Positions 5,455-64,000 of a DNA stretch of 64,000 bases are shown here, piece by piece. The notes beneath the pieces were generated by a model. That model was not told the DNA's origin. It searched no databases and was given only the letters and a program-made list of their open reading frames with translations. The stretch is from Hemiscyllium ocellatum (taxonomy: Eukaryota). Position numbers and translations under genes: made by a program. The DNA is taken from NCBI RefSeq assembly GCF_020745735.1, contig NC_083428.1, forward strand, positions 28,582,001 through 28,646,000. The letters are read 5' to 3'. Each line of letters opens with the position of its first letter. Positions within the stretch are counted from its first letter, which is position 1.

Positions 5455-8400
5455 TTACAGAATTAGACACATCCGTGAAGTCTGCACACATGCTTTGAGA
5501 CGCTTCTTTCGGTTTTCATTCAGCCTGGGTTTTGCAGGACAATTGTTCATCATGACAGGACTGTCTGAATAGTGCCTCTTATGGCTCCGGTGGAGAAGGA
5601 TGCGATAAGTCCCAGTGACGGGACTGTGACAGTCCCAATTAGGATTATTACAGATGTGCTCCTCTGTGATTCCCAGGCCTCTCAATGCCTTCTTCACCTC
5701 CTTTTCCTCTTCGTTTAGAGGGAGAGAACTGACTAGATGTGCTGGATTCAAGTGGAATGGTTGGTATGGCTCAGGACATTCCATTCCCTTCAGCCATGGA
5801 CTGTCCAGGATGTTGTCCAGGGTGTAGCGGTTTGTTGGAATGATTTGAAGAATTCCATGAATTAGTTTCCGGCAGGGATCTGATACATATGATGGAATTG
5901 TGTATGATCCTAGTAAAATGTACTTTTTCAGCTTCCTGATAGTTTCCGCACGGAAAGGCAAGGTTGCCGTCACCATGAAGTACAATAGGATGCCCAGGGC
6001 CCAGATGTCCACATGAATTCCAAAGTAGCTATTTTCTTTAAAGAGCTCAGGTGCTGCATATGGCGGAGAGCCACAACAGGTGTTTAAGGGTTCTGACAAA
6101 GGACACACTGCACTGAAGCCAAAGTCACCCAACTTCACACAGTTAGTAGCTGAGTAGAACACATTTTCTGCCTTGAGATCCCGATGGATCACATTGTTTT
6201 CATGCTGAAAAGGAAAATGGAAAGTTAAGCAAGTATGAAGGAAGGAAGGAAGGAATAGATGGGAAAAATTTGGAATTGATAGTAGATTAGTTTTAATAAA
6301 CATACCAGGCACACTGGAGCTATCACCAGCTCCAACTCCATCACTCCATTCCAACATTGACTTCTCCCCAGAGCATAGCCAAGATTAACATTTCTAAGGT
6401 TATTAAGAATAGAATAGAAGAATCATCTTAACCCTGCCTCTTTATTTCTCGGACAGACGTCTATCGGTCTTCAGTGCTTTGATATTCAGATAATATGGAG
6501 GGGGTCCCTAGATATATGTCCCACAAGTGAGGCCAGGTAAGTAATTCTCTTGGAGTTGGGATTCTATATGATTCTTAATGCCTTCCTTATCTGAATAAAG
6601 AGGTAATTCTTCTACAACGCACAGAGTGTCAGAAACAAACAGATCGAATTCAACAACACAATCTCAATTTGGTAATCTTCTCTTCATTTTCTGTTGCATC
6701 TACCCAGTCTTTTCTGATGGGTCTGCACTGTGGATTCCTTTCCTGCACTAGCCTCCTTTCCTGAACTCTGGATTGCTTTCTGACAATGGATTTCTTTCTG
6801 ACACTGGATTCTGTTAGTCAAGCACAGTTGGAAGATGGAGGAGGATAGAAAGCAACAGTGATATACACCTCCCAGTCAAGTTTAGTTGACAAATTGCTGC
6901 ATGACATTTTTTAAATTGTCACGTTTTTAACAGTTTTTAAAAAAATTCTTTGGGCTAGCATTTTCTCGCCCATCCCTAATTGCATTTGAATTGAGTGGCT
7001 TCTTCGGCCATTTCAGTGGGAAGTTGAGAATTAACCACATTACCGTCAATCTAGGGTCATGTCAACGTGGCAAGATTTCCTTCAGTAAAGGATATTAATA
7101 AGCGAAATGAATATTTTTAACCAACAATCAATGATAGTTTTATGGTCACCTTTACTGGGGGGTGTTTATAGTCCATATTTATTAATTAAGTTACAATTTC
7201 TTTAATTTCTAAAAGCTGCTGTCATAACATTCAAACCTATGTTCCCCAGAGCATTACTCTGAGCCTCAGAATTATTAGTCCGGTGACAATATTACTAAAT
7301 TACTGTTTCTATATCCTGTTTTGACTTCCATAAAGGCTGCCTTTACGGATTGTTTTTTCTTCCTTTCTCATGGTTGGTGCTGATGAGAATTTGAGGGACC
7401 CACAGAAGTTCTGATCCCAGATAAGGCAAATCCTATAAGCTTACTCGTGTCACTGAAAAATCAGGCCTCAAAGGACACAACTGATCACCATTAATCAGAC
7501 TGTTCAATTATCATGCTGAAGGGAGCCATGTCGCTGAATTCTAGAGTTGATGCTTTAGGGGCCCTCTTGCAGCAAAGTGGGGGTAGTGTCCCTACCTCTG
7601 GACCAAGAGACTAGGATTCAAGTTCTACTTGCTCCAGTGGTGGGTAATAACATCCCCTAATAGGTTGATTAGAAAAATAATTTTTTTTTAAAGAGATCAA
7701 GCTGTTGGAGCAACAACAGTCTGCTATTTTGCTCAGGCCAGAAGAACACAGGCCATTACTGCACCTGACCTTTAACCCCTTCCTAACTGAAGTTTGGAGA
7801 TTACATGCATCATTTTTTGACTACCCTCTTTACTTTTCTATGTATCTGATAATGTTGACCTGCCACAGAAAGAGTGTTTGTTGGATTATAGCTTATAGCT
7901 GGAGAAAGCTTCAGACTGTTTGCTGAGAAAATGGTTAAAGCTATGCCGACTTTCATATCACCAATTCACTGGATTATTGCAGATAATCTTGGATATGTTT
8001 AGGATCACAGGGCATGGGCCTATACACCCGAATTGCTAATTGGCATATTCTTACCTCACAGAATGTTCATGAAAATGCTTTTACTGTTACAGTTTAACTG
8101 CTATCACATCCATGTCAATATCCTTTTTTAAACATTTGGCTTTGTGATGGCTATTCATCAATAAATGTCTCAAGTTGTTCAAAAATCTCAACATCCTCAT
8201 TTCAAGGAGTCTCATCTGTCACCAAAGCTAAATATGATTTTCAGGCAATGCATGATTTGAAGTCTTGCAATATGAACTGATGCTGTCTTCACTCAGGACA
8301 ATATCATGGTAGATAACTACCTGCTTGTACTCAGGCGCAGTGTCACGTAGTGTTATGTATAATATTGTTCAGACAATCTCTGCATTCGAATGTGTTTCAC

Positions 8401-11400
8401 CAGCCCACTCACATGTGTCCTACTTGATAGAAACAGATGACGATGATGAACAGGAATTAATAATGCTCAGGAAACTTGGTAGCAAATACCATCTTGATCA
8501 TTGACCTTGGTCCTTGTGAAGGAACCAAAGTCAAGAGACATGGTCACATGCCAGTTGGTCATGCAGTGTTGTATAAATAAATGAGTACCAAATAAGTAAC
8601 TGCAATTCATTTTAGTGAAAAATTAGTCTTTTAAGACATGAGTAATATTTGGATGAGGGCAGAAGAAGAAAAGAATGACATACCTTGTAGGATCTTCTTC
8701 ATTTTCTGAATGTTGTGGCAACCTCTACACTATGCTGCTACCTGGTCATTCCATAAGGACTTTGAAGTATATAAAATTGATACTGCTTTCTTCCTCTCAC
8801 AATATCCTCTGGCAGTCTGAAAACTAAATGCAATCTGGTGGATATGTCAGACTTTAGTAATGATGCAGGAACGGAAAGATTATATAGATAATCGACCTTA
8901 AACGATTTGTCTTTAATATGAGATTGTCCATTAGGTGAATGTTTGGTACCAGTCTAATTTAGTCATGTGCAAAAAAGGCAATATCAACTTAATGATGTTA
9001 ATACAAGAGGCTTATTTTAAAGCCAAGACTACATCTCCACTTACCATATGTTTAACAGCTGATACAATCTGAATAAATATAAATTTACTCTCATATTCCA
9101 AGAGACGTCCCCTTGTGGAGACCTTGGTAAAAAGATCCCCTCCATCTGCATACTCCAAGACCAGGTACAGTCTAGATTGTGTTTCCAGCATCTCATACAG
9201 CCTGATGATATTTGGATGATGAAGTTGCTCCATACTCAGAATTTCGTTTATGAACAGTTGTCGTGACTTCTGGGTTATTTGCTTTTTATTCATGATTTTA
9301 ATTGCCACCTTTTCTACAAGTTACAGAGAGAAAGACACTCAATTATATTAATAATTCATAATATTTCAATATACCTGCAGAAGACAGGTGTCTGAATATT
9401 TGTCGCTTCTAGTAAATGCAAGTAGGCTATATTACAAACCTAACTGATCATCTTAAATTAGTTGTTAATGTACTCTTAGCACACTCAGAATTATTTAATA
9501 AATACTGCCCAATAGCATAATCACATGTAACATGAGAGATTACACCCTGACTTTTGTAAGCATGGATTCGTTGAGTATAGCAGTACGCTGCCTGTTAAAT
9601 ATGTGGAACTTCATATGCAGAGACATGTCCAGACATTGTACATTTTTAAGTAAGTAAAAGCATGAGGAATAATAGTCCCTGTGCATTTGTCATTGGCAAT
9701 CTCACAACCATAAGATCTGAACTGCCAACCAGTCAACATCACTTTTCTCATGCAGTACAAAATGTTCTACCCATTGAGACTTAACATTATTCTATCTGTG
9801 CTGCTGAGTGCAAGATGAAAGATTTTAACAGCATATCTCTTTTTGAAACAATACTTAAGTCTTGTTCCAAGTCAATACTCATGGGCTGTATATGTAGAGT
9901 TTTCTGAGCACCACTATACATCAGGATAGTGTGTACTAGGACACAAACAAAAATCTTTAATTTACTGAGATTGTGTATGCCGACTGGTACTATACTAGAA
10001 TAAGCCAAGCAGTTTTTAATATTTGGATGTTTTTATGTTGCTTTAATGTTGCCCCTTTCAATTTAATCACGATTGGTAATCTTCAGGACAATTTTATGTT
10101 AATGTTTGGATATAATGCAATTTTCGAGAAATGAGAATTGACAGAACAATGTTTCTTTATGATGTTATGACTGTAAACCCACACTGTTATGTAGGTACTG
10201 AGGCACAAAACACTTCATAACACAATATGATTCTACATCAAGTAACTGGAGCTTGCAAAGTAGTTGAATATCAGATTTATTAGTTAGGGTAAGGGTTGAG
10301 AGATTACTCAAGAGGCTGGAATTAAGGGAATAAAGACTTTAGGTGGAGATTGAAGGTAAGAAACAGAGGATCAAAAACAGAAAGAGTGTCTTAAATTTTG
10401 AAGTGGAATATAAACAAAACCAATGTTTGTCATAGAAGACAAGATTGCAAGGTCAGCAGGACTTGATGTGGGATATAATACAACATCCAAGTTTTGATGT
10501 GCAATAAAGTAATTATGGCACAGAAAGGGGTCTTTTGACTCATTGAATCCATGAGCTGAAGTAAAGGGAAAACAAAACGGTGAGTGAGCGATGAGATTTT
10601 AGCCCGGAACATTGAAGTAATCAAGTCTGAAGGCTCTAAAGGTATGAATTCACATTTTTATTTAATGCTAAATGGAATGAGGCAAGAGCAAAAATAGCTG
10701 ATGTTGTCCAAGTGTAAATAGTTGATCTTGTTACAGAGAAGACATGGGTTGAACATTCAACTTGGGAAAATAGGACCCTGAGGAGGCAAACAATTCCATT
10801 GAACTAGACAATGGAAGAGAGACTTTGGAGGGTAACCCAGTCACCAACCCTGTCAAAGGATGTGGAAAGGCTGATAAAGATGAGGATGAGTAATGGCCAT
10901 GTTCAGAGCAAATGTAATTAGAGAATCTGGTTAGGGATACCAAAATAAAGAGATTGAAGCATGGAATTGCATCAAACTGAACAAAACTTTGGAAGGCAGA
11001 ACCATATTGAATTAGTTTGCAGAAGGTGAGGCAATGACAATGACAGAGAGGTTGAGTTGTTCTTTTTAAAAAAAACACGACTTTCCAAGTATGGCAGTTT
11101 CAAAAGGGAGAATAACAGTATCTCAGGGCCTATTACAATGAAGGTTGAGAAGGGAAGTTCAGTTTCATAACTGTGGAGTCAAAGAAGCAGAAACTGGGTC
11201 TCAAGGATAAAAGAGGAGGGAGCAGAGAAACTAGACAAAACTAGTTCAGGGCTCAGGTGGGGGAGATGTGGAGGACAGTAGAGTTTGACTTTATGGCAAA
11301 GGAGAAGCAATGCAGTAAACGTTGAATGGATAGTCCCAGTCTCCTTTACAAAGGATTACTGTTGAAGTTTGGAGTGGTGATGCACAGAGGAAATGTGTTA

Positions 11401-13093
11401 AAGGCAACTGTTGGTCTTTTAGAAAAAAAGCTAAGAGCTATCTTTGCCTCCCAGAAGTGGTGGGTGGTTTTGGCAAATGAGGCAGAGGTTGATTGGTCTG
11501 TTGATATTTAGCTAGACAAGATGCATGGAATATAAGATTGTCAGTGGTAAATGAAAACATTGAGAAGGAAGATAGAAAGCAAAGGGTTTTTAAGAGACTG
11601 GTATATGAGAGATGTGTCTGAACAAACTGAAGACTGCTTAAGTGATGAAGGTCCATGAAATCTTTGAAATATGGAAATACACCAACTCATGCAGCTAAAG
11701 CTACATCGTCCACCTTATGATGTGGGCCACTCAGGATAAGAGGCTGAACTGCCAACTGTTCCTAAGTTCAAAGCCAAGGCATCCTACACAAATAAAGACT
11801 TGGTAGTACTACTATAACAACATTTATCGATTAACACAATCCTATCATGGGATCACCAATAAAGAAATATTTGACTAAGTACTCCAACTATCGAGATCAA
11901 GTTGAGCCGTCCAATTTGAAAATGTTAAAAAAAATGTTATCTTCATTACTCCAAAAAAGGCAAATAAAATGTAAAGAAGATACTCTCACCATCCACATTG
12001 TAAAAACTCATGTGAATGTTAACTGTAATCAATTGGTGCTGAACCTGAAATAGTAACAAATTACCTTTGCTGATAGTGGTTGTGTCTGTGATCATCTATG
12101 GAAGTATTCCTAGTGCAGGTTTTCTAGTGCTCTAAATGGGCCATGTTTCCAAATTAACTTGTGTTTGTTAGTCTTTGTGCTTCAGAAAACCCACAACTAA
12201 ATGCTTCGGTCACAGATGATGGTTGCTGTCAATGAGACTTCGTTATTAATTGAATGGAGGTGGATGCTGAAAAACTGCAGTACACAGAAACTCAGTGAAT
12301 CAGGTGGCATGTGTAGAAAATGAAATCAAATTAATATTTTAAGTTCTTCTGAAGAGTCATAATGGACATTTTCTGAAGGAGAGTCAAATTGGACTTGAAA
12401 TGTTAGCTGTTTCCGTTGCCACAATTGCTGCCAGATCTGCTGAGATTTTCGAGCACTTTCAGTTTTTATTTCAGGTTCCCAAATTGTCATTTTAACAATG
12501 TCAAAAATTGGTGATGATTGTCAGTGGTATTTTCCTCTGCCAGTTTTAATGAATGGTTTAAAGATGCATTGCTTGATGCATTAAGCTCCATACTGTTTCG
12601 TAATGTTTAGTTTAGAATGTAATGCTACTATTACATTGTTTCACAATATATTACAGAATCATAGTATGGCACCAAGTATTATAAAGCAGACAGATTGTTG
12701 TTTATAATCTGGATACCAGTATAAATTGTCTCTTGTGAAAATGGAGACAACCTCTAATCAGCCAGACTGCTCAGTATATAGAATAGGAATGGGTCAGGTA
12801 AACATACCTTTTGTCAAGCAGTGTATTCCAAGCTTCACTTTTGAAAAGTTCCCAGTGCCAATTTCTCCACGGAGTTGGTAAAATCCAATCCTTTTTCCAA
12901 GTATCAGGTCATTTTTAACTTTCTTGCTATTCTTCATGTCATAAATAACTTTCTCAAATGGTGAGAGTAAGATGTTTTGTTCCTCTTCTTTCTCCTCATC
13001 CATATGGCGTTGCATCTGCCATTTAATACTTCGTGTTGTGCCGAGGTAACCCCTCAAACTCTCGTTGTGAACAGAAAGATTTGCAACAGCCAT
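5455..13093 (-). CDS. nim1k: NIM1-like serine/threonine kinase (AMPK-related family); exons 13093-12808, 9313-9045, 6204-5455; 434 aa
   Basis: Exon 1 ...GKRIGFYQLRGEIGTGNFSKVKLGIHCLTK with donor G|GTATGT at 12807. Exon 2 (E)KVAIKIMNK...HPNIIRLYE...AVKHM|GTAAGT. Exon 3 HENNVIHRDLKAENV...DFGFS...CGSPPYAAPELF...CLIL*. Phases 1 and 0 join in frame (286+269+750=1305 nt). Orthologue versus paralogue of NIM1K is not resolved. Confidence 0.92.
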
Positions 13094-14019
13094 CAATAAG
13101 GTTCACAGGTTGTGTCTGATAAACTGGAATTTCTTCCTCAAAAAAAAGTCTGTCAAAGCTGGTAGGAAGTTCCCCTTTAAAGGAGCATCCTCTCAATGCA
13201 TTAGTTGATCCTCATTAAATTTTATTTCATTTAAGTTCCTAATGAGCTCTTTTCTTAAAAGATCCTTTCCAAGTTTGCAGTTGTACTTCAGAAAGCCCAG
13301 GACTAAATGCTTCTGCCACAGATGATGGCCGTTGGCAATGAGACAATAATATTATTACTTCATAATCGTTTGGGTAGACATTGAAAAATATTCACTTTGT
13401 CTTCCCCTTAATGGGAGATCTTTTAATTTTTCAGACAATGACTGAATGTATTCTGTGATGACACTGGAAGAAAAATAAACGTAATTTTGATAATGGACAG
13501 TCAGTAGATCTGTGCAAAGAATGTTATTTGATAAGGTGCACAAAATCTATTGTCTGATTTATAAAATAGCAAGAGATCAACCCATAGAGAACTATTTCAT
13601 GTTGTTGAAAAACTGTGATTGGAATGTCTATGTTCAACAAGTTATGCAGTACAAAGTTATTTTCCCCTACCAAGTATACATCCAATTTTCTTTTTAACTT
13701 ATTTAACATCTTCACTTTCATTACCCTTGGAGGCAACAAGTTCCAGGCCATTACCATTCAATTCTTAAAACAAAACATCACCCTCATACTCTTGCGCAAA
13801 ACATTATGTCTGTGTCACCTATACCTGGTACCACGAGCTAATGATAACTGTTTTTCTTCAATGAGGCATAAGGTGTTTCTGAAACTTCAGATGTCAGCCA
13901 AGAATATGGCTCTACTCTTTAAAGAGTGACAATCCCACTCTTCCTGTGACCCTTTGACAGTCCCACTTTAAAGCAAGGTGTAGGTTCACTACCAAATAAA
14001 ATTCGAAACAACTGTGAAT

Positions 14020-34315: not shown

Positions 34316-37300
34316 TTAATGGCACCCACAGCTTCCAGCAACCATGTCATCATACTGTTTCAGGACGACGTTTTCATCATCATCAAAATAGAGAAGATTA
34401 ATGGAGAAGAGTTTGTCTGGGATACAGCATGGAGATGCCACATCATTAGCTAGTTTAAGAGCATTGATAATAGACTGGACAGTGGCATGATTGGTTGGTC
34501 TCATATTTTGGCCCAGTGGGAAGAAACATGCTCCTTTACAATGATAAGCATTGTAACCTCGAGGGGAGATAATCCAACCAGACCAGCCAATCTCTTCAAA
34601 GTCTACATATAGAGGATGCCTTTGACATGCTTGGAAATGCAAGGACCTTGTGTTTCGGTTCTGGCTTGCTTTGTTCTGGAGTGTTCTGTGAGAGAGAAAC
34701 GGAATCTCTGTGGCCATATCTGTAAATGTGGAGTATAATGAGTTAAGTCATCTCATGTATTCAGGGACCATTTATAAAGAAAAATCTTTTCTTGCCCTTT
34801 AAGATACCAGCACCATTTGTTTTTTTTTAAAGCAAATGTTGTAGACTTTGGCATTGTGTATTTTCAGCATTTTTCAATTATAGAGGAGCTGTGATTATCC
34901 GGCACTCGATTATCTATCTGAATATCGGATAATCCGGCAAGATTCAAGGTCCCAAAGCTCGGCTAAACTGTTATCCAAAATTTGATTAACCTAATGAAAT
35001 ACTCCCTGTCTGCGTCCTTTGGATAATTGAAGTTCCTCTATATTTCAGCTGCAGAGAAGGAAATAAACTTAATCTGACCTGAAACTTTTACTCAGGTTTG
35101 ACAGTTTCCTTTGGAAGGAAAAACAAAGTATTTTCTGTTTTTATTAATGCCCTCTGTATGTGTGTGTCAGCAAGGATTCTTGACTGAAACTAGTTTTTGG
35201 AAAGTTAAATCTTGTTGTGCTGGATTATGGTAATACTCCAAGCAAGGAATCTTTGAATTTTTTAGATTAATCTCTTAAACAAGCATTACTACCAGGAGAC
35301 AGAGGGAGAGAATAGCTTTTCCTTTTACACCTGTTATTGATCTGTAATCTATACTCCAGGTGTTGACCTACCTTTGAGATTACTAACAACTTTAAAACCA
35401 ACCATGGATCTGTCAGGTAGATACAATAGTGCTTGATGGCTCAAAACAGTCAAGTGAGAGAACAGTTCCAGTGCATGTCTGGCAGAAAATTCACTGTTTG
35501 GAAAGTCTAGGTCATTGTGTCTGAATCTGCCATCTGGAATGAGGGATTGCAGTCATGTTTTCAAACTCCTCCCACATAACTCTGCTAATGACTCACTCAG
35601 CTTCCTTGCTCTTTCTGGCATGGTATTACCTTCCAGTCAGCCACACATTGACTGTTACAACTGACATTACTCCGATTCCTGTTTTGTAGTAAGTATTTGA
35701 AATAATAAAGGAAGAGCCCTCAAGTCAGTCAATCCATCCATTGTAAAACCATATAGCTTTCCCTTACTGTGAACAGTACTTTGGGTGTTCTTGCAATAGA
35801 TGGACTGCACCTTTTCAGGGTGGCAACTCACTAACATTTTAGGGCAGTTAGGGATGGGTAACAAATGCTTGTTTTGCCAGTGACTCCATCATCCCACGAA
35901 AGGTGTAAAAAAAATTACAATAGTTCTGCAATGCCTCTTCCAATTCACCGCAAGCATTAGTTGTCTATTCGGGCCAACGTCTTCTGCTAAGCACTTAGAT
36001 GTGGGTCAGATGCAGAAGTAATTTAGAATTTTAAAAAGCCAATTGCTACATGGGATGTAAGGGTATTAATTAGGTTTAAAAATAAATAGTTACCATGTAA
36101 GGTGAGGGAGAATGAATTGGCTGTCCTGTTCTTTATAGAAGTAAAGTGATTGCACTGTTGTTGTGGTTTTTCACTTTGCCTCAGTCTGGCAGTCCTGAAT
36201 TTTGTCTGAACTAATGTATCAGATTAAGAATTAGACCTATAATTTTTCATGTTGTGTCCAGCTGGGCAGCACACAGGACAGGTGCCATAATTTAAAGTTA
36301 ATTACTTTTATATAAATGAAGAGAATTATACTTTTGGCTCTTAAATAAGTTTGAAGGAAGACTGTCAATAAGTGACCCAAATGAGACTGAAACCAACTAG
36401 TTAAAGCAGGAGCCTAATTACAGCTTTTTGTGAATGTGTTTAAACAGAGTACAGTAGTGAGGTGGATCTTATCTTTGGTACCAATCATAAGGACTTTACC
36501 TTTTCGTGACGGGGAAGTGGTAATCCCTCTCCTCTCCTCGTCTGTGAAGAGGACCAGCATTGGTTGCTTGCTGCTGTGATGATCTCGTCCTGTGGCAAAA
36601 CGGACAAAATGATTGCTGGTCTGCTGCCCAGCCAGAGTTTGCACAATGACCATCAAGCCTTTGTTGCTCTTTATATCCTGTGTCCATGCATATACCTGCA
36701 CAAATAAAGAAATCTTCCATCAATCTAATACAGCAAGTGTTTCATGCAGGTTATAATTCCCTCTATTGTATCTCATGAACACTGTCAAATCAGCTGCAGC
36801 AGATGTCAGAAACCGAACAAAATTCCTTTTACTCATTCCAAGCTATGTGTCTTCACCATCAACCCCAGAACAACAGCTCCTATTGCACCAAAGAGACATT
36901 TCCATTTTCCATTTGCAACACCGATATATCTGAGGTCATTGGGCTCTGCATTGCTCACATATCTCGAATAAGGAAAACCCTGATTAAGTTGTCAATACCT
37001 TTGAAAGACAGCTTTTTCATGTCCATTATATGCAAACCTATCCACTTTGTGTGAAGTTCATATCATATGTCCTTTTGTACCACTTAAAACTGTTCTTGCT
37101 TTAGTATCTTATCGCATATTTAAACAAGACATTGGATTAATTTTATCAGTGTCATTGAATTTACACAAAGCTTGAGTCACCGTTTTGAGGTTTAAGAAGT
37201 CATTCCTGAGGAACTCAATTGTTGTGCATCAATCCCATGATTTAACTATGTACCATCTGTAGATTGAATATTACTTTCCTTCCTTTTTATAGCCAAAACA

Positions 37301-40263
37301 GGGTGCTATTTATTTTGCAGTTTTAGCACTATTCTTTCTGACATAATTGACTGGTTGGATATTTGCTGTAGAGCCACAGATGTTAATCCAGTGTAGTTTA
37401 CAGAGTCAATAGTTTGATTATTTCTATCCAGCATTCAGTGAGCTCTTTATCCTCACACAGACCCCTAAATCTGGTTCATTATACCAGAGCACAACTGGCA
37501 TCTGTATGCTGGTTAGTATGCACATTCTGTTGAAGCGTATTGGTAAAGGCTGAAATACTGATACTGTTACTCTTACAAATAACAAAAAGAGTTCTAAGAT
37601 TGTAATCTGTGTAGTTTCATATCCCTAACAAGGAGAAACATCTATCTAACACCTAATGTGTCAAGTTATAACAAGATTCTGTGCAGTTACTACAATATAT
37701 TTTTCTATTTTATATGAGAAGGACTGTAATGTTTAACTTTTAAATGTCTTTATTTTTCTATTTTGTACTTGAGTACATTGTATCTGATTTTGTGCACTTT
37801 TCACTCCTGTAAGTTACTCCTGAAAATTGGTTCACTTACTGCTGATACAGCAGCAGTTGCTGTGATTATTCTCTCAGCTGTAATAATCAATACAAAGTAC
37901 TGTACATAGATGTTTCTGTGGACTGTTTCTATGGAACAGAAGGCCATTCATCTCATGAATGTTGGGTTCCCATAGCGTGGCCTCGTCAGTCACATTCCCC
38001 TGTTTGAGCCCTGTAGCATTGCAAGTTTATTTCAATTACCCATACTATTTCATTGGTTGTTTCCATGTCTACCATACTCCAGGACGGCAAGTTTCTGGCT
38101 ATTGCCACTACTAGGTTTTTAAAAAATGTTCTTCCTCTCATTCTCCTCTGTTCCCGAGACTTTGTACCAGCTAAGGGGAAGTGTGGTTGTTTTCTTGTCT
38201 TAGCTTATTTACTCAAATTGTGATCTGAATTCCTCTGTATTATCCAAGGAGAACAGTCCCAAGCCTTTGCAACCTAACTTTGTAAACCTCCTCTCCACCC
38301 TCTCAATGGCCTTCCCATCTTTTGTCAAGTGTGGTGACCAGAACTGGACACTAGTACAGTTGTGGCCTAATCAGAGCACTATAAAGATTGAGTGTAACCT
38401 CCTATAGATTTAATGTAGTACTTTCAAAAAGCTGACAGAAACAGGAAGAAGTGTTTGTGGAAACTGTTGGATTTTAAATTTTAGCAGTAAACCCTATGTT
38501 AAATGAGACCATTAAATAATGTTTTTTACTGTTCATCTAATTAAGAAATATGAGGGCCTTAGAACAGGGAAAATGTATTTCCTTCATAAATCATTCAGCA
38601 CTAACATTACAAGGTCCTTTCCAAGCCACTCACTATCCTGACTTGAAAATATATTGCCTTCCCTTCACTGTCTCTGGATCAAAATCCTGGTCTTCCATCT
38701 TTAATGACATTGAGAGTATTAATGTATCATGCCAAATGATTGTGAAAACAGTTAGTTTGGACACTAACAAGATAATGGTACAAGTTGACATGATTCCTGT
38801 TGCATCTTCCTAGAGGGCACAGTGATTAGGGATATTGTGGGTATATCATATTTCAAAAGCTATTCCTGTAAGTTTTATTAAATGTTGTGATCCAATGTAA
38901 CTTACAGCCTTGGTGATTGTGAAGACCTCCCATGTGCTGTCATGGACTGCCAGTATTCTGGATGACAGCAGTCGTAATTCCTCTGCTGTAGATGTGTTAT
39001 TACTGTCCAGTATCTGGTAGACACTGACCTAAAATAGAGTTTACAGCTCAGGCAAGTTGTTACAGCTAATTATATTTTTTAAAATAGAAGAAAACAAATT
39101 AAAATCGCTGCACTGCTCCTGATCATGAATGATTTCCACATTCTTTACATCTGGTTGCAAAAACTGTCTTGTTTCTTATGTGGTGCAGCAGTGCACACTG
39201 AAGTAGTGACATATCGCTTACCTCCTGCCCAAGCCAATTATTCCTACCTGTTTTATGTTGTGCATTCACGCCAATATTCGACCAGTTACGCTGCTGTATG
39301 TGAAACGTGGCAGAATCAGTGTAAACAATCCAGTGATCATATCAAATTCAGATAAAATTTCCTTCTTTAAGTACGCAACTGATGTTTTGGGCAGTCCCTC
39401 ATTCATACATAGAACGCATACTTGACGCTTTGGGTCAGTTTTAACTTTGTGAAAATGGGTGATCAGGAACATAATATCTATTTAACGAACAGAGAATGGT
39501 GTTAAATGGCCGTGTTGTTTCACCCACGGTGGGAGGACTTAAACTGCAGAGAAATGGTTTTGGTTTCTCAATTTTTTCCCCCGACTGTTTACTGAATTAC
39601 ATTCTGACTTTTATGTCCCTTTGAACTTCTTCCCGGCTTGCCTCCTCTGCCTCTCTCTTTCCTAAGGACATTCTGAGTGAAACGGTTCTCTCCCTTATTG
39701 TGAGGTAGTGTCGTTTGAAGAGCCTTGCCCCGCTCTTACCTGACAGAAGTGTTGTTGCCTTTCATACAGGTTATCCTGAAAGAGTCGACCTCTCAATTTG
39801 AAGAGGTGCAGCTGAGCGGTAAGAATGGTTTCGCTCTTAGCCACACTGGACAGGTTGAAAAAGAACTGGAACTGCTGGCTGCGAGCTGGGAAAGAAAAAA
39901 TGTAAAGATGAGCAAAGTGGGGCGGGGGAGTTGTCAGTAACCACGTCTTTACTTAACACAACATGGGTCAGCTAGGCTCTCACTTCTATCCAGGAAGCTG
40001 CGCACCGTGTTTCCCACGAGTAAATCAGGTTGCTTGGTCACTCCGTCCACGTCTGCAACTGCATTGTAAAGGTCCAGCATATACTGAGGGGGCTGGCGGG
40101 CCCTGTGAGGGGACTGTGGGGCGTCCTCCATCCCGAAGACCTCGAGCAGCCTCTTCAGTGCGTGGGATCGGAACTGCTGGCTGTGACCTGGCAAACTGGC
40201 GGCGCAATTCGGCCGCAGGGACATGAGCAGGAGCAACAGCGAGGCTGCGAGTCTACAGCACAT
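34316..40263 (-). CDS. admp: Anti-dorsalizing morphogenetic protein (BMP/TGF-beta family); exons 40263-39984, 39885-39740, 39028-38906, 36695-36500, 34719-34316; 382 aa
   Basis: GCCATG start and hydrophobic signal peptide. Prodomain PPQYMLDLYN...GNTVRSFLD|..FFFNLSSVAKSETILTAQLHLFKL..HFCQ|VSVYQILD..WEVFTITKA|VYAW..KQPMLVLFTD. Furin site RNTR. Mature domain [32 protein letters not shown]...RPTNHATVQSIINALKL...[26 protein letters not shown], characteristic of ADMP. All introns GT-AG, phases 1, 0, 0, 1 (1149 nt). Confidence 0.95.
34881..35040. mobile_element. Tc1/mariner (Tigger-like) MITE in admp intron 4
   Basis: TA|TAGAGGAGCTGTGATTATCC...GGATAATTGAAGTTCCTCTA|TA: imperfect terminal inverted repeats with TA duplication. 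Confidence 0.7.
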
Positions 40264-54950: not shown

Positions 54951-57900
54951 CTCATCTCTGTCCTGAAGAGGGTGCTAAGAACATGGCTAGGGGTTACTGC
55001 TATTGGCTCAGAGCTCTCTCTAATAGCTCTTGCTGGTAAGCACAAGCACCAAGTGAGGGCAACAATTGGATACAGGTTTGTGGAAATCAAAATCATGGGA
55101 TAGCTCACAATCACTGAAACGATTCAGTTGTCTGGGAAAGGAGTAGTGCATAACATATATTAAAGTGAGACATGATACAAGACATTCGATTGACTGTTCG
55201 GGATGTGGTAATCTCTACTATTACTGGCTCGGAAAGTGGATGTGAAATGGACATCTGACAACTGGCGGTGATTACACTGTGGTGTAACCCTACTTTCTGT
55301 CTCTCTGTTCATTATTATTTTGTCCCGTGGCAATTGCAGGGTTTGATGGTATAGATCGATTTGAACTTTCCACATCGGCTTCTGAATGAGAGAGTTTCTA
55401 TTCCCACAGGGTACAATCATTTAATGAGCTGTCTTCACAAACCAAGCACTGATCCTTCTGAGAATTCCTGAAAAAAATGGGAAGAGCCATCTACATCTTT
55501 GATAAGGGGACCAGATTTCATCCATGGAACTTTGGTCAAGTATCAGTTGTGAGGAGGGGACTTGAAACTGTTTTGCCATTCCAATTTAACAGTGAGTGCT
55601 TTTAAGATTAACTCAATATTTCAATACATCACGATCTTGTCAAAAATTCAACCAGTTTTTAAGTACAGTACATTCAAAGAACAGCTGAACATTCAGTTAC
55701 CGCATCACTGTCTTTATAGTAAATGTCTCCCCTTCAGTTCAACAACTGACTGTCAGAAATACACAGGTCCTCTGAAGTTAAAGCAAACCAAACTCAAAAA
55801 GGCTTACAGATCATGGCAGGAAAGGCAGCATCCTAGATGTCATATTCTGAAACAAACCATTAAAACAAAGCTGAACTGTACTCCTATAAATTTCCACAGC
55901 AGAAATTATTTAAAATTGTCTCTAATAATAGTCTAACCCTGGCTCTACCAGAGTGTCAAACAGCTGTGATTTACACAGAGATTAGATATCTCTTGTTGAC
56001 TTGCACAAAGATTGATAAAATCTCAGTAAATTCCACAGAAATCGGATAGTTCTGAGAGAAGTACATGAAGATTGGGTACAGTACCTACAAATAAAGCTAC
56101 ATACAAACTTTATTCTGCCTCTAACGGTGTCTTGACTTGCTGAAGAACATTATGTTGTTTATACTGTGTAAGGTGTACTTCAAATTTTTAAATTTTTTTT
56201 AATACTGCAAAACCTGGATGCAGGCCCAACATCTATAGTACTGAATACAAAGGCAATGAGGTATATCATTGTGATTAAGTTAAGCCTACCTTGCATACTA
56301 AAAGTTAGAAGATTTTGGTTGAAAATAATTATGTGGAGGATTTTACACATTCAATATATTAAAGGTCTCACTAATAATTTAAGGATCTATGAATGTGTGA
56401 GCTTTCAAAAGAATTTCCAGTGGCACATCACTTCATCATGTTTACATTCCTCTAACACAATTTTAGCACAACAGTAATTTTAACTGATACTTTCCCTGAA
56501 ATAGTGATCCAGTGAACACTTCTGGAATCCACTAAACAGTTTTTGCTAATTATGTTGCAATATCTTAAAACAGTTTGGCAAGAAAGGTCAAACAATTGAA
56601 TAAAATTCTAATTCAGAACGATCTTTGTAAGTATGTTAATCTTTTCAGTAGTTGGAATAAAAGAACTCTGATTCTTAATTTCATAATAAAACAAAATTAT
56701 GAATTATCTTTGGCTTTTGTTTTGCTCTGTTGATGTTTCTATTTCTGTACTACTGTTTCTTATTGAAGGTAATTCAATTTTACCGCGTCATTAGCATTAA
56801 AGTTAATTCATTTAATCCCTTGTGCCAGCTCTGTTTCCATATCCATTTATTTCCTTTTCTTTTAAGCACCTACCCAACTTGCTTTTAATGCTGACACTGA
56901 CAATAGAATTTCCTCAAAGATTCTCCTGATCTCCCTCTGTAATTTTGCCAGAAATTCAGAGAAACAGCATGAACAGCTACTTAAGCTGTTGTGGCACATC
57001 CATTAATATTTTTGCAAGAGTTTTGGAGAACCTTGTAGATCATATACACAATGGTTCCTGCTTTAATCTTGGCTCCAGTAGTGCTTTCAATAACCTGATG
57101 AGCTTCTGTAAATGTTGCTCTCCATCCTAAATCTTATATTTAATCTTATGTTCCTCACTTTGAGCCTTCAATCTCCAGAAAGAGTTGGTTTCTACTATTT
57201 CATTTATATCTTTTCATGATCAAAAATATCTTTATTAAATCATGTTGAAACAGTTCACACTCAGCTAAACTTACATTTTTCATCCAGTCTTCATATGTAT
57301 ATTTTCTCAGCAGACAGGCAAGCAGCATCCTGTTAAACCCTTCTTGTCTCCTCTATTATTTTAAGAGCTTTCCTAAAGCGTGGTACCAAAATCTGCAGAA
57401 AATACTTCCACTATGATTTTACTATGGTTTAATATACCATTGCAGCTTGACTTTGGTATTCTATATCTTGTGATAAATCACAGCATGCCGTTAGCCTTCT
57501 TTCGGCCTATATTGTTTAAGGTGGTGCTTTTAACTTCTTGTAAACCTGAACACCTAAATCTCTTCTCTCTTGCTGATTGAAAATACAGTTAATATTTTAA
57601 AAATATTTTTGTTGCTGCTGTACAGGGAGAATCTGTCTCTTGAGTTTGGACCAAGCCTCTGTGGACAGCAATACCAAATCATTTAGTGCCCAAAATTAAC
57701 CAGATGTCATGGCATCCGCCAGAACATTACTAATAGTGAAACTCAGCATCAGACTATCTTTTGAAAAACATATTCATGGAGGTGGGGAAGATACTTGGAC
57801 CAGCTGTGCTCACCTGAAGTGACAGCCACTTCCTGCAGTACGCACTCCCAAACATCTGCCAACCTCGATTTCCTGTAACATTATCACAACAAAGAAGTTC

Positions 57901-58644
57901 AATCACTTCTGGAGCCAATACAATGCACAAAAGCCAAACACTGAGCAAACTGCAGCTGCTGAGTAATTAACACCTCCAGTACCTTAAGGCTCTCTTCCTT
58001 CTCACTGCTGGAATTAATAGTGATCACATAGTAATACTCCACATGGGGCAGTCTGTAACGGTTCTCTGTCATTTCACACAATTCCACAGTTTGAAAAAGC
58101 TCTAATGCATTTGGATTCTCAAACACAACTGATTCAAATTTGGTGGGTACACATCCCAAGCCACCTGCAGGGACTAAACAAAACAAGGGAAAATATTGAG
58201 GAAAAAGATTGGCTTACTTTAATGATGGTATTTCCCTAAGTTCTTCCTTAAGGATTTACTGGAGAACATTACGTAAGCAGCTGTTACCTTACAGGGAGCT
58301 ACATGATTACATCTCTCAAAAGCAATAAGTATTTATAAGCACCAACTATAATATAGGCAGGAGATTGTACTTTTGGTATTAGTGATACAATGCAGTGGTT
58401 TGAAAATTAAATGTTCTGCAACTTTTGCTGTTGATTCAGGCTTGACCACCACCTCCAAGTCTTAATATTCTGCTATGAATTATATATAGCTATTTTGTTT
58501 ATTTTTTCCCTAAGGTTAGATGTTCCCATGAACAAGCACCAACCTAATGTCCTGTCACAATTGCTCTTTCTCACTCACCCTGTTTTGCTTGTCCAAGCTA
58601 TCTTCTCCTCCCTATCCTGATTTCAGTTAGGATGGAGTCTAATG

Positions 58645-59045
58645 GAATCATAGAGATGTACAGCACAGAAACAGACTATTCAGTCCAACCTATCCATGTC
58701 AAACAGATATCCTAAATTAATCTAGTCCCATTTTCCAGCACTTAGTCCATATCACTCTAAACCTTTCCTATTCATATATCCATCCAGATGCCTTTTAAAT
58801 GTTGTAATTTTACTTGCCTCCACCACTTCCTCTGGCAGCTCATTCCATACACGCACCACCCTCTACATGAAAAAGTTGTCCCTTAGGTCCCTTTTAAATT
58901 TTTCTCCTCTCACCCTAAATCTATGCCCTCTAATCTGGACTCCCCTACCCCAGGAAAAAGACCTTGTCTATTTACACTTTCCATGCCCCTCATGATTTTA
59001 TAAATCTCCATAAGGTCACCCCTCAGCCTCTGATGCTCCAGGGAA
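58645..59045 (-). mobile_element. CR1/HER1 3' fragment
   Basis: Reverse complement of the CR1 tail (catagagatgtacagcacagaaacag...ataaggtcacccctcagcctc). Confidence 0.85.
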
Positions 59046-59679
59046 ATGTCTGCTGAAAGTCCTCCAGTAGGTTACTGATGTTGCATTACGTACATTATTG
59101 GAGTTAATGGAAATTAAATTTAGGAGAAATGGAACAGGCTTTGATTGGCTATCACCCATAGGATAGTGCACACTCTGAGATTACACAATGAGATCACCCA
59201 TGTAAATTGCACAGCAAAGTTACTCATGGATTACATTTTCTTGGACACATGGTGGTGGACTTAGAGGTAGGTCAGGTCAGCCTTGTACACTTACAGCGTG
59301 CCCATAATTAATTCTCCTTAGTTCATTCCTGGCAGTTTTTCATGTGGTGCCTGTCTGTTTAAAACGTGTCTAATTCCTTTCCTCGCAAACAAGCACTGGC
59401 AGTGAGTTTCTTTTTATGAAAACCTCTTATGGTTACATTTCCAGACAACAAATGACCTCTCAGTAAAACACTGCGTAATTAACACAGTTTTATTAGATAG
59501 ACATCAAGAAAAGGTATATTCACGTGTTGAGTAGTCCATGGTGGCAGGTCAGAAGGATCACATAATTATCTGAAACAATGAATTCAGGATAAATGTCTTA
59601 TCTTGTGAATGTGGAATGAAATATGATTAGAATGTGCAACTTGTTACCATGTGGATGAGTTGAAAAGAATAGAATACCA

Positions 59680-59985
59680 TGAGTTTGGACTCAGGCCATT
59701 TGGCCAATCAAGTCCACACCAACTCTCCAAAGAGCATCCCACCCAGGCCCACACCACCTCTCCCATGGCTAATCCACCTAGCCTGCACATCCCTCGCAAT
59801 TTAGCACAGCCAACCCACTTAACCCACATATCTTTGGACTGTTGAAGAGACCAGAGCACCATGAGAAATCCCATATAGGTAGGGATATAATGTTGAAACC
59901 CCACACAGACAGTCGCCTGAAGATGGCATTGAATCCAGGTCCCAGGTGCTGTGCGGCAGCAGTGCTAACCACTGAGCCACCATGG
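59680..59985 (-). mobile_element. HE1-like V-SINE (diverged)
   Basis: gcagcagtgctaaccactgagccacc head and ccacacagacagtcgcc in reverse orientation. Confidence 0.75.
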
Positions 59986-60646
59986 TCTAGTTTAGATGTA
60001 TTTCAGGAGAAGCTATATAAGTGCAAGAGGATGAAAGAAGTAGAAGCAAGATGACCAGATTTTCAAATGTCAAAACCGGGACACATTGAAAAGCCATTTG
60101 TGAAGCTGACATATTGGCTGCCAACAGCAGAATCTACAAAGGACAGTCGAAGATGGGAGTGGATTTGATGACATCTCCTAGAATGTTCCAGCCGGAGTTG
60201 GTAATCCTATACTATAGTTGTTTAAAAAGGCATCCTCAGCAATGGAGCCATTGACACTAAAACTATAGTGATAACTCCCTTAGAAATGACCAGGGGGCAG
60301 TAGAGAGAGAGCTACAAGTCCTCTGCATGCAATTCAATATGTTTCATTGTTTACAGGAAGGAGGATAAAGTTTCCAATCAATTTCCCCCACCAGACCTAG
60401 TTTGATAAAGAAAAGGGGGAATGTTAACCATGTATAATCAAATGATTTTTCGGATGTTGTTGGGACACCAGGTCATTTAAGAAAGACTTGACTTCTAGTT
60501 AGTCTAAATAGAAGAATAAAAATGTTAGATGTCATTGTGGGAGAAGAGTTATGTCATGTATAAATTTCAGAACAAACCAGCTAAACTAAATGCTTGTTCT
60601 GGTGCTATAAATTCTGTGTGATTTCAGTTCCTTTGTTTTAGCTGAA

Positions 60647-60694
60647 GACGTTTATAAGAGAGAAAGTAATGACGTTTATAAGAGAGAAAGTAAT
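60647..60694. repeat. Perfect 24-bp tandem duplication GACGTTTATAAGAGAGAAAGTAAT x2
   Basis: Copies at 60647-60670 and 60671-60694. Confidence 0.9.
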
Positions 60695-60804
60695 GCTCGA
60701 GATGGAATTTTCTCTATTTTGTATCCATTATACCCATATGTGAGCCAGGAGACTGAATTATAACATTCCCCGCTGATTTCTAGTTAGCTTCATTCAAACT
60801 GCCT

Positions 60805-61042
60805 TGTGAAATAACTCCACAGATACCAGGATCCCATCATTAAGTCACCCTTTATTTACATGTGGAAATTCCTTGACACTATTCCAGCTCCCTCAGAGCC
60901 AACTGTCAGAGTGAACAGAATCTCTGACACTCCTGTTTATGTCTGTCAACCAGGGCTCACTGTTTGGACCAGATTAACAGCCCCAAACATGGAACTCATA
61001 TTCCATGAGGTCCACCTGGCTGTCTTTGTTACAATCACTACA
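60805..61042 (-). mobile_element. Possible short solo LTR
   Basis: TG...CA termini (tgtgaaata...tcactaca), AATAAA on the minus strand near 60850, similar cct flanks. The TSD is not exact. Confidence 0.4.
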
Positions 61043-63319
61043 CCTAGGAGCCAAAGATGGGACTGACTGCAAGGATTTCAATTGGCCATAAAAAGCAATT
61101 CAAGAGTCTCTCAAAGAGCAGTTCGAAGCTAATAGGCAATTGGGGAAGCAGAGTAAGAATCAGGTTTCATGGCAAGCAGTTGGACTGTTGAGAAAAGTAA
61201 CTGAATTGGACCTGTGTGTTGGGTCCAGGAAAAAACTGCAAAAGAAATTGTTGGGTAGTTCTGTGTCATGAGGAGACAAGAAGGAGCTACTTGATACAAC
61301 TGAGCAAGATTAGAACACAGGGAAAAACCCAGGGGCAGTACTTGCTTGACGAAGCTAACTGTTGGTGAGAAGCAGGAATTATGGTTGTAAGGGCTGGAGG
61401 GCAATTTACAGAATTTAGAGGACTGGACTCCCAGGAAAGGAAGGTAAAGTCCAGAATGTAAGCAGTCATTGAGGCTGTCTATCTGGCTTTCTAGGCCAGA
61501 TAATTATAAATGAAGTCTAATCCATTGTGTAGTTTTAATGAGATTTGTTGACCCAATTTATCACTAATGTCAGGAGGAGAATTGCTGATCAATCAAGAAT
61601 GTGTCTTGATCACTTATTGCCAGTTTTCTCTCCTCACAGAGAATAGTGTATGTTGAAAAAATTTAGAGGAGGTTATCAGGTTTGTCAGGACAACATTTCA
61701 GTGGTGCAGAAGTACAGCTAATTTCCTTGTTCACTCCACCACAGCCTTTCTGCATGAGATGTTAAACTGCTTCTGCCTTCTCAGGTGACCATGAAGAATT
61801 CAGTGGGGGTTCTAAGAATAGTTACGAGTTATTAATGGTGTTCCTGATGAGCCTTTCTTGTCTTCTACAATATAACTGAAAAGAGATTATCTGGTCATTC
61901 CTACAATGTCATTTGTGGGAGCTTACTGTGTACAAATTGGCTGTTATCTTTCCGATAGTGCAATAATGACTACACTTGGAAAAGCATTTGATAGCCTGTA
62001 AAAAGCCTGGAAATATCTCGAGGCCATTTAACGGCACTTGTAAGTTCTTTATTCCCTTACTAATAGCTAACCACTGCATGGAATTACCTGGAGTTCTTGG
62101 GTTGGAGCACTTGCCCACATCTACAGTGACCTCCAGTGGACTATCAGCTGAATGTTTTCAGAAGGAATGATTGAACACGTTGGTCTGGAGTTGCACTGAC
62201 ACTCAGACTCCATTAAACAGCAAAACCTGCTCAACCCTTACCAGCACCGGTTCACACAAAGAAACTTGGGGTGGGGGTGGGGGGCATGAAGACCCCGTTG
62301 GCATTCAGGCAAATTCCAATGTCTGTTCTAACGCTAGCTTTTGGAGAAAGGAAAGTAAGTAATGCGAACAACAGTGAGACAAAGTTTTTAATTGAAACTG
62401 AATCAATGTCCTATAATCCTTCTTAAAGTGAATAGCATGCCATCTATTCTCACATTAACCAGGAACTCAAGGTTTCCACAGAATCATCTTTGTATTCTGC
62501 AGAATACATACTGAACAAACTTCAGAAAATACTTTTTACAAGATAGGAAAACAACATACTCCAGATACTGCAAATATAAAATTAAAACAGAAAATGCAGT
62601 TAATAAGCCATATCTGTAGAGAGAAACAAAGTTGAGATTTCAATTGATGACATTTCCCAGGAGAGTTGGCTTCAAACCTATTACTGAGGAAATTCACTCC
62701 TCAATTTTCCTTATAAATACCTCATTAATTTTAATTTTACATTTTTTGTGAGTTAGTGAAAAGTTTTTTTCCCTTGAATCTTGTTAATTTGGAGTTGATC
62801 CAGCACAGAGATGTTTAGGAAATCTGAGGAATTCATTGTTGTACTTTTCTGATCTCTGACAGTTACCACAGTGAGAATGACATCTCCCAATGTCGATATT
62901 GACAGGGCTGCTGCTGATATCTGTCAGAACAGAACGGTACAGGTCACAAACGAAAAGGATGACCTAAACGTACACTATGTTTAAAATGAAATTCTTTTCA
63001 GCCATGCTCAGGAAAAGCATTACAGCAAAGCAACCAAAATATTTCACAAACTGAGCATCAAAGAACAAACATGACAAAAACTAGTTGAGGTAGAAGTGTA
63101 AGTCTACCTGAGATAGGAAGGAATTGAATCAGACAGAGGGTGAGACTGGACCAGACAGAGAAAACGTAAGACGATAAGAAATGGAAGCAGTAGGAGATCA
63201 TGTTCCTGTCGACCCTAGCCCTATATTCAGTATGATCAGGCTGATGTTTGGCTTCAACTCCTCTTTCTACCCCAATCTCTGTATTCAGTCTCTGACAGAC
63301 CAAAGATTTACCTAATTCA

Positions 63320-63410
63320 GCCTTATGTCCGAAACGTCGATTCTCCTGTTCCTTGGATGCTGCCTGACCTGCTGTGCTTTTCCAGCTCAACACTCTCGAC
63401 TCTGATCTCC
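63320..63410 (+). mobile_element. PLE tail fragment retaining the 3' half of the hammerhead motif
   Basis: ttatgtccGAAACGTCgattctcc...gatgctgcctgacctgctgtgcttttccagc; the CTGATGA half is missing. Confidence 0.65.
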
Positions 63411-64000
63411 AACTGCTAACTCAACTTTAAACATCTTCAATGATGGAGCATTCAGAATCCTCTGGAGTAGAGAATTCCATGGATACGTATCCTTTTGAAT
63501 GAAGAAATATTTTTACGTCAGTCCTAAATGACCACCCCGTATCCTGGGATGTGTCCCCATATTCTGGATTCCAGCCTGGGGAACAACTTCTCAGTGTCTG
63601 CCCTGTCAAGCCCCATAGATATATTGTCAATGAGTTCACCTCTCACTGTTCTAAACTCTAGAGTATACAGGCCCATTATACTCAGCATCTTGTCATAAGA
63701 CAATCTTCTCATCCAGTGATCAATCTCGCCCCAAGCAAGGATATCCTTTGTTAAATGTGGAACTCACCACCAAAGGCAACTAAGAGCGACAATAACTGAT
63801 GACCAGGTCTCATGAGTGAACAGAAAAAAGCTGCACACAGATGTCCAGGTGTGGTTTATCCGTAGCCCATATTATGGTAGCAAGGCATACTCATTCTTCT
63901 ATGGACTCCAATTCTTTGCAATAAAGGCCAACATGCATAAATATTTTATGCTCAGGCATACCATGACACACATCTGGAGTTTGAATGCAGGTCCTTTGAA

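Follow-up and report, generated by a model that had tools for sequence, protein, structure and literature searches.

Does the DNA directly upstream of admp in the hemiscylliid shark Hemiscyllium ocellatum still encode a Pinhead protein, or does it only record the loss of one? The question is raised by five exon-like pieces that lie at positions 55315-62920 on the minus strand of a 64-kb stretch of contig NC_083428.1 (RefSeq assembly GCF_020745735.1, positions 28,582,001 to 28,646,000). We refer to this entire stretch as the window and use its numbering throughout. Xenopus laevis Pinhead is the founding member of the family to which these pieces had been assigned by the original prediction, which was made from the letters of the window and proposed a dead pinhead (pnhd) gene next to a live admp. 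Our analysis of the sequence indicates that the locus most probably represents a unitary pseudogene of pnhd (roughly 0.88) that lies at the gene's ancestral site in this hemiscylliid, upstream of admp, with disabling lesions at an orthologous, syntenic locus.

By using named Pinhead proteins as tblastn queries against the window, we found that Pinhead from Scyliorhinus torazame matches the five relics in order, with E values of 9e-15, 6e-16, 2e-30 (exons 5 and 6 linked), and 9e-8. Pinhead from X. laevis yielded values of 7e-17, 7e-7, 4e-5, and 2e-3, such that four relic exons are matched significantly, and the catshark, sawshark, coelacanth, and X. laevis proteins all match the relics in order. 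This search had been set beforehand as a check on the original prediction, which had recognized Pinhead from motifs and synteny; the significant values obtained with the catshark (2e-30 to 9e-8) and Xenopus (7e-17 to 2e-3) queries, along with synteny and exon phases, uphold that assignment. The exon-5 piece (57983-58171, minus strand, 63 amino acids (aa)) is the sole long clean piece, and it yielded 40 matches with E values of 1e-3 or less when searched with phmmer (HMMER) against the whole library. The top matches are entries named 'uncharacterized protein pnhd' from Chiloscyllium punctatum (97% identity) and Mobula birostris (70%). Each of the 13 matches checked by name is either an entry labelled pnhd or Pinhead (im:7138239) or an unnamed vertebrate protein whose alignment is that of a Pinhead, and 11 of these come from bony fishes, squamates, and a bird. 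Further searches recovered full-length Pinheads from many vertebrates, including the X. laevis 'pinhead L homeolog precursor' and proteins from coelacanth, gar, and several sharks. The relic pieces produced zero matches to Pfam, which is without a Pinhead family. Judged by homology, synteny, and exon phases, the minus-strand relics at 55315-62920 are pinhead (pnhd).

The exon arrangement was examined by using the DNA of the intact teleost pnhd locus of Centroberyx affinis, which has seven coding exons, as a structural reference. The five relics correspond to exons 3 through 7 of such a gene. Exon 3 (62780-62920, minus strand, as are all relic exons) carries the first Cys module, DISSSPVNIDIGRC...FPKHL / SVLDQLQINK, and begins at the acceptor cag/AT at 62921/62920. 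With the S. torazame protein (P0167), this exon is detected as one high-scoring segment pair (HSP) at 62921-62808 (E value of 9e-15) and a second HSP at 62815-62780 in another frame. Exon 4 (62088-62337; tblastn E value of 6e-16) carries the second Cys module, exon 5 (57983-58164; 2e-30) has an open frame, and exon 6 (57814-57872) holds the start of the third Cys module, EIEVGRCLGV-R-TAGSGCHF. Exon 7 (55315-55467) encodes the end of the third module, which closes with ...IKPCNCHGTK and a stop codon, and its match is divided between two HSPs (55457-55413 and 55413-55324) that lie in different frames.

Intron positions and phases all equal those of Centroberyx (0 after exon 3, 1 after exon 4, 0 after exon 5, and 2 after exon 6), and the exon-4 acceptor 'caaaag' is common to both loci. 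The claim that five exon relics carry matching splice phases was thereby borne out at every boundary compared with the intact gene. Seven of the eight splice sites bounding exons 3 through 7 are canonical, and the exon-3 donor is the sole defect. The window is free of N runs.

Lesions were read from the minus strand of the assembly sequence between 55200 and 63000 in three frames and were judged against intact shark orthologues. We identified nine: four small frameshifting deletions, one net 20-nucleotide (nt) deletion, one nonsense codon, one splice-donor mutation, and two Cys-to-Arg replacements. In exon 3, a 2-nt loss in a CTCTCT run (~62808) shifts the frame after FPKHL and exposes TAA at 62786-62784. 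The donor of this exon, a phase-0 site, is lost at 62778-62779, where a GT-to-AT change at 62779 yields AAG/AT in place of AAA/GT (Centroberyx ...AAAAAA/gtaagt versus window ...AACAAG/attcaag, with the window boundary at 62782-62780/62779-62778). Exon 4 contains a GGA-to-TGA nonsense mutation at 62307-62305, at a position where orthologues have Gly or Arg. A net 20-nt deletion (~62205) has removed the RELEVIE codons and exposes TGA at 62205-62203, and two further 2-nt losses follow (~62175, TGTGTT to TGTT; and ~62152, before SADSPLEV). Exon 4 also contains a 12-nt C-rich in-frame insertion (PPPPPQV) that is harmless. CGT codons replace conserved cysteines in exon 5 (58060-58058, ENCYR to ENRYR) and in exon 6 (57842-57840). 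Finally, a 1-nt loss in exon 7 (~55413, TGTTAC to TGTAC) exposes TAG at 55400-55398.

Most of these defects had been listed in the original prediction, and the three-frame translation and codon views agree with it at each coordinate given, including the TAA behind FPKH(L), the AAG/AT donor, both CGT codons, and the TAG that precedes the IKPCNC ending, which lies in another frame. The ECQC, LLKTF (LKTF as first listed), and DSPLEVTVDVGKC blocks likewise fall in three different frames. The prediction had also named two in-frame TGA codons. Both are present, but the one at 62205-62203 is rejected as an independent nonsense mutation, because it arises from the 20-nt deletion. In total, five deletions that shift the frame, a nonsense codon, and the loss of a donor interrupt the coding sequence. 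Although three Cys-rich modules are still recognizable, Arg stands in place of two conserved cysteines and the second module is spread across three frames. As read from the sequence, the relics cannot encode Pinhead, since the nine lesions bar production of the three-module secreted protein.

We also compared the relics with intact proteins by concatenating the relic pieces, with an X marking every break, and adding them to an alignment of 12 chondrichthyan Pinheads and 118 others. Both Arg codons replace cysteines that are at least 95% conserved, for the exon-5 site among the 118 non-chondrichthyan proteins. The window mismatches 11 of the 56 covered columns with at least 95% conservation, and approximately seven of these mismatches, including the two cysteines, are hemiscylliid-specific. 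Tajima relative-rate tests were conducted with the window versus Scyliorhinus, Mustelus, or Carcharodon, and with Pristiophorus, Heptranchias, or Heterodontus as the outgroup. These tests counted 42 to 49 unique replacements for the window versus 9 to 16 for the other shark (p values of 6e-4 to 1.5e-7), whereas rates were alike for pairs of intact sharks (p values of 0.08 to 1). Amino-acid change has therefore been 3 to 5 times faster on the window lineage than in sharks with intact pnhd, across all exons (p ≤ 6e-4). Note that misalignment near frameshifts could inflate the window counts. These comparisons of sequence point to a relaxation of selective constraint on this lineage.

The gene upstream of which the relics lie, on the same strand, occupies 34316-40263 (minus strand) in five blocks (~40263-39985, 39901-39791, 39028-38900, 36698-36501, and 34747-34316). 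Canonical GT/AG junctions join the blocks into an uninterrupted open reading frame (ORF) of ~390-440 aa, which matches Pfam TGF_beta (3e-35) and TGFb_propeptide (1e-6). The blocks are colinear by tblastx with the TGF-beta gene directly downstream of Centroberyx pnhd, and the seven-cysteine mature domain is 89% identical to that of Centroberyx over 104 aa. A search of the ESM Atlas with the mature domain returned 'TGF-beta ligand' and nothing finer. These features support an intact admp gene, whose name derives from synteny and literature rather than from an ADMP-specific phylogeny, and they vindicate the description of this neighbor as live.

A pnhd gene directly upstream of admp is the arrangement described in the literature (PMC6989304, PMC8188501), and the order in the window is identical to that of Centroberyx, wherein pnhd is followed by the same-strand TGF-beta gene with a protein-kinase gene nearby. 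The window carries a clean, multi-exon Ser/Thr protein-kinase gene at 5455-13096 (minus strand) that is the orthologue of the kinase flanking Centroberyx pnhd. The synteny block that flanks pnhd is conserved in teleost and shark.

Protein models from other species were used to score which lesions are shared. Among the sharks compared, only three hemiscylliids (H. ocellatum, Chiloscyllium plagiosum, and C. punctatum) have truncated or aberrant pnhd models, and all three RefSeq models are without exon 7 and without an in-frame exon 3. Among the matches to shark Pinhead, there are zero hemiscylliid proteins of at least 142 aa. The H. ocellatum model (XP_060702575.1) has four exons that are present letter-for-letter in the window, with pieces at 62846-62920, 62089-62148, and 57813-58165; its first exon was not found in the window. 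In this model, exon 3 is translated out of frame, a cryptic acceptor at 62148 inside exon 4 is used, and the reading continues through the exon-6 donor. The resulting product is without the Pinhead signal peptide, and two of its knot cysteines are replaced. From this composition, we regard XP_060702575.1 as an artefact of decay and not a Pinhead, and the locus should be annotated as a pseudogene. The C. plagiosum model is partial (107 aa), and the C. punctatum model (133 aa) runs into intron 5 and, including a new 5′ exon, extends over 15.4 kb.

The ENRYR Arg is common to H. ocellatum, C. plagiosum, and C. punctatum, with both Chiloscyllium sequences coming from their own assemblies. However, C. 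plagiosum keeps Cys at the equivalent of the exon-6 site (57842-57840), and thus this second replacement is younger than the split between Hemiscyllium and Chiloscyllium. Likewise, the C. punctatum model reads the RPTCVRSFLLKTYSADSPLEV / RPTC..LLKTY..SADSPLEV stretch in one frame. Judged from this protein model, the two 2-nt losses at ~62175 and ~62152 are therefore absent there and are also younger than the genus split.

Full-length Pinhead models of 322 to 323 aa exist for S. torazame, S. canicula, Mustelus asterias, and Pristiophorus japonicus. The Carcharodon model is near-full, and the Heptranchias model is intact from exon 3 onward. Pinhead is thus intact in models from three further shark orders and nearly so in one from a fourth, which limits the loss to Hemiscylliidae. 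We conclude that the loss is recent and lineage-limited, being confined to this family of bamboo and epaulette sharks, although it possibly extends to all Orectolobiformes. Loss in all elasmobranchs is ruled out by the intact models in other shark orders. The proposal that this lineage lost Pinhead and kept ADMP consequently holds in that the relics cannot encode Pinhead and admp is intact, but the loss cannot be generalized to sharks and rays, given that full models exist elsewhere.

Several observations weigh against a unitary pseudogene. RefSeq annotates the locus as protein-coding (XP_060702575.1, 'uncharacterized protein pnhd', 140 aa), which may reflect transcript evidence. Exons 1 and 2 (the signal peptide and the RN..CC(R/K)RQ block) were not found in 62921-64000 by tblastn and motif scan, and they may lie beyond the window because the S. 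torazame gene spans 47.6 kb; the 5′ end of the gene is then outside the window. Moreover, dinucleotide runs are the setting of three of the frameshifts, each a 2-nt loss, and this context is typical of assembly errors as well.

The first of these observations bears on the idea that the locus has been kept for a function other than Pinhead, either as non-coding transcription acting on admp in cis or as an aberrant short protein, of which the 140-aa RefSeq product would be an example. RefSeq mRNA models are present at the locus in all three hemiscylliids, the one from C. punctatum has its 15.4-kb span and new 5′ exon, seven of the eight splice sites of exons 3 through 7 are still canonical, and there is a precedent in Ciona, where pinhead transcription acts on admp in cis (PMC6989304, PMC8188501). 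Nevertheless, the models are explicable by protein-guided gene prediction, and the 140-aa product has no Pinhead signal peptide, an exon 3 that is out of frame, and two replaced knot cysteines. Slow substitution rates in sharks can alone account for the surviving splice sites. We consequently view a retained non-Pinhead function as unlikely. It is similarly doubtful that the relic would be a transcribed non-coding unit still shaping admp expression in cis in the manner of Ciona pinhead. If this were true, the gene pair would have kept its regulatory half after losing the protein, and hemiscylliids would offer a natural, laboratory-tractable knock-out of the pinhead protein in which the cis link is preserved.

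A second alternative is that the relic is a dead duplicate and that an intact pnhd gene resides elsewhere in the genome. We consider this very unlikely, because the relic sits at the ancestral position upstream of admp amid conserved neighbors, and because a search of 5.8 billion proteins with shark Pinhead, including the RefSeq annotations of the species concerned, returned no protein of Hemiscyllium or of the two Chiloscyllium species other than the truncated models. Each of the other sharks listed has a single pnhd match. It is more improbable still that the gene is functional and that the lesions are assembly or consensus errors: although three frameshifts do lie in short dinucleotide runs, there are nine lesions of five kinds that include four base substitutions (the nonsense, donor, and two Cys-to-Arg changes) and a 20-nt deletion, one Cys-to-Arg replacement recurs in the assemblies of two other species, amino-acid change is accelerated 3- to 5-fold across all exons, and the neighboring admp and kinase genes have clean exons, contrary to what poor local sequence quality would produce.

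How a unitary pseudogene of pnhd might have arisen can be outlined. Selection on the coding sequence would have been relaxed in the ancestor of Hemiscylliidae, and the first disabling event may have been the shared knot Cys-to-Arg replacement or something in exons 1 and 2. Small slippage deletions, the nonsense codon, and the splice-donor mutation would then have piled up, some only after Hemiscyllium and Chiloscyllium had split. The locus would now make no Pinhead protein, and any leftover role would be at the level of RNA or chromatin. Xenopus Pnhd acts as an antagonist of Admp, to which it binds (PMC8188501). Zebrafish that lack pinhead have no dorsoventral defect, since admp is up-regulated and compensates (PMC6989304). 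As in these zebrafish mutants, Admp and other BMP ligands presumably buffer the loss in hemiscylliids. The original prediction had drawn from the loss a 'rewired axis-patterning circuit', and this is not supported as worded because admp buffers zebrafish pinhead mutants; by analogy, the loss may simply be tolerated.

Several side observations concern the relic locus and Pinheads of other species. Relic intron 4 contains a fragment of the 3′ tail of a long interspersed nuclear element (LINE) and a tRNA-derived element resembling a short interspersed nuclear element (58700-59060 and 59700-60010). The LINE tail is of the MRGM..RVWNELP type, which also occurs at 21.4, 47.2, and 54 kb of the window. 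In the RefSeq models of Heterodontus (P0166), Cetorhinus (P0162), Carcharodon (P0200), and Heptranchias (P0161), the signal-peptide exon is missing or replaced, and the Heterodontus model also reads through the intron between exons 3 and 4. These altered 5′ ends reflect either modeling without embryonic RNA or early 5′ decay. The pnhd model of M. birostris (P0002, 154 aa) comprises exons 5 through 7 only and shows Trp and Tyr in place of two conserved cysteines, and thus pnhd may be decaying independently in this species.

Two sites in the third module (window 55413-55460 and 57814-57830) show another pattern. The Trp of QC.VWE is Cys (QC.VCE) in the window and in Scyliorhinus, Mustelus, Carcharodon, and Cetorhinus; Heterodontus and the squalomorphs do not have this change. 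Carcharhiniformes and Lamniformes carry Asp, Tyr, or His in place of the Cys of AGSGCLLR, which is conserved elsewhere and is kept in hemiscylliids. There has apparently been a disulfide relocation in galeomorph sharks, and in the aligned sequences hemiscylliids look like an intermediate state. Among birds, full-length Pinhead-like models are present in many species, including ratites, Anser, Falco, and passerines (P0188, P0192, P0195, P0186, P0164, P0191, and P0040), which is at odds with the statement that birds have no pinhead homologue (PMC6989304). Some of these bird models are fused to POLE4 and carry the name 'DNA polymerase epsilon subunit 4'.

Pinhead and Admp are among the oldest conserved gene pairs in dorsoventral patterning, and this pair has become uncoupled in epaulette and bamboo sharks, while catsharks keep pinhead. 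Epaulette and bamboo sharks are egg-laying laboratory models, and catsharks constitute another model group. The hemiscylliid loss would thus provide a natural experiment on the contribution of Pinhead to the robustness of axis formation. In addition, three RefSeq 'pnhd' protein models are flagged here as pseudogene artefacts. Otherwise this is an ordinary lineage-specific gene loss of moderate wider significance, since the loss of pinhead is already known to be buffered in zebrafish. A literature search for pnhd or admp with shark or pseudogene found no report of the hemiscylliid loss. In the literature, pinhead and admp are viewed as co-evolving, so that a lineage either keeps the two genes or loses the two, the latter being the case in mammals (PMC8188501, citing Imai et al. 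2012).

Intact shark pnhd genes (S. canicula XP_038632494.1, S. torazame XP_072338704.1, and M. asterias XP_078054856.1; 323 aa) are orthologous to the window copy and have the same exon order. Relative to these, the relic exons retain 73-83% protein identity outside exon 4, and the galeomorph Trp-to-Cys change in the last module is common to both. The intact shark models include the signal peptide, exons 1 and 2, and an open ORF, whereas the window has five frameshifting deletions, a stop codon, a dead donor, and two Cys-to-Arg replacements. Pinhead from X. laevis (P0174) and that from zebrafish likewise have three Cys-knot-like modules and are encoded directly upstream of admp (PMC6989304, PMC8188501). 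The Xenopus and zebrafish genes encode secreted proteins that bind or act with Admp, but the window copy cannot. Mammals have lost pinhead too, but together with admp, whereas in H. ocellatum admp has been kept and the ancient pair is uncoupled.

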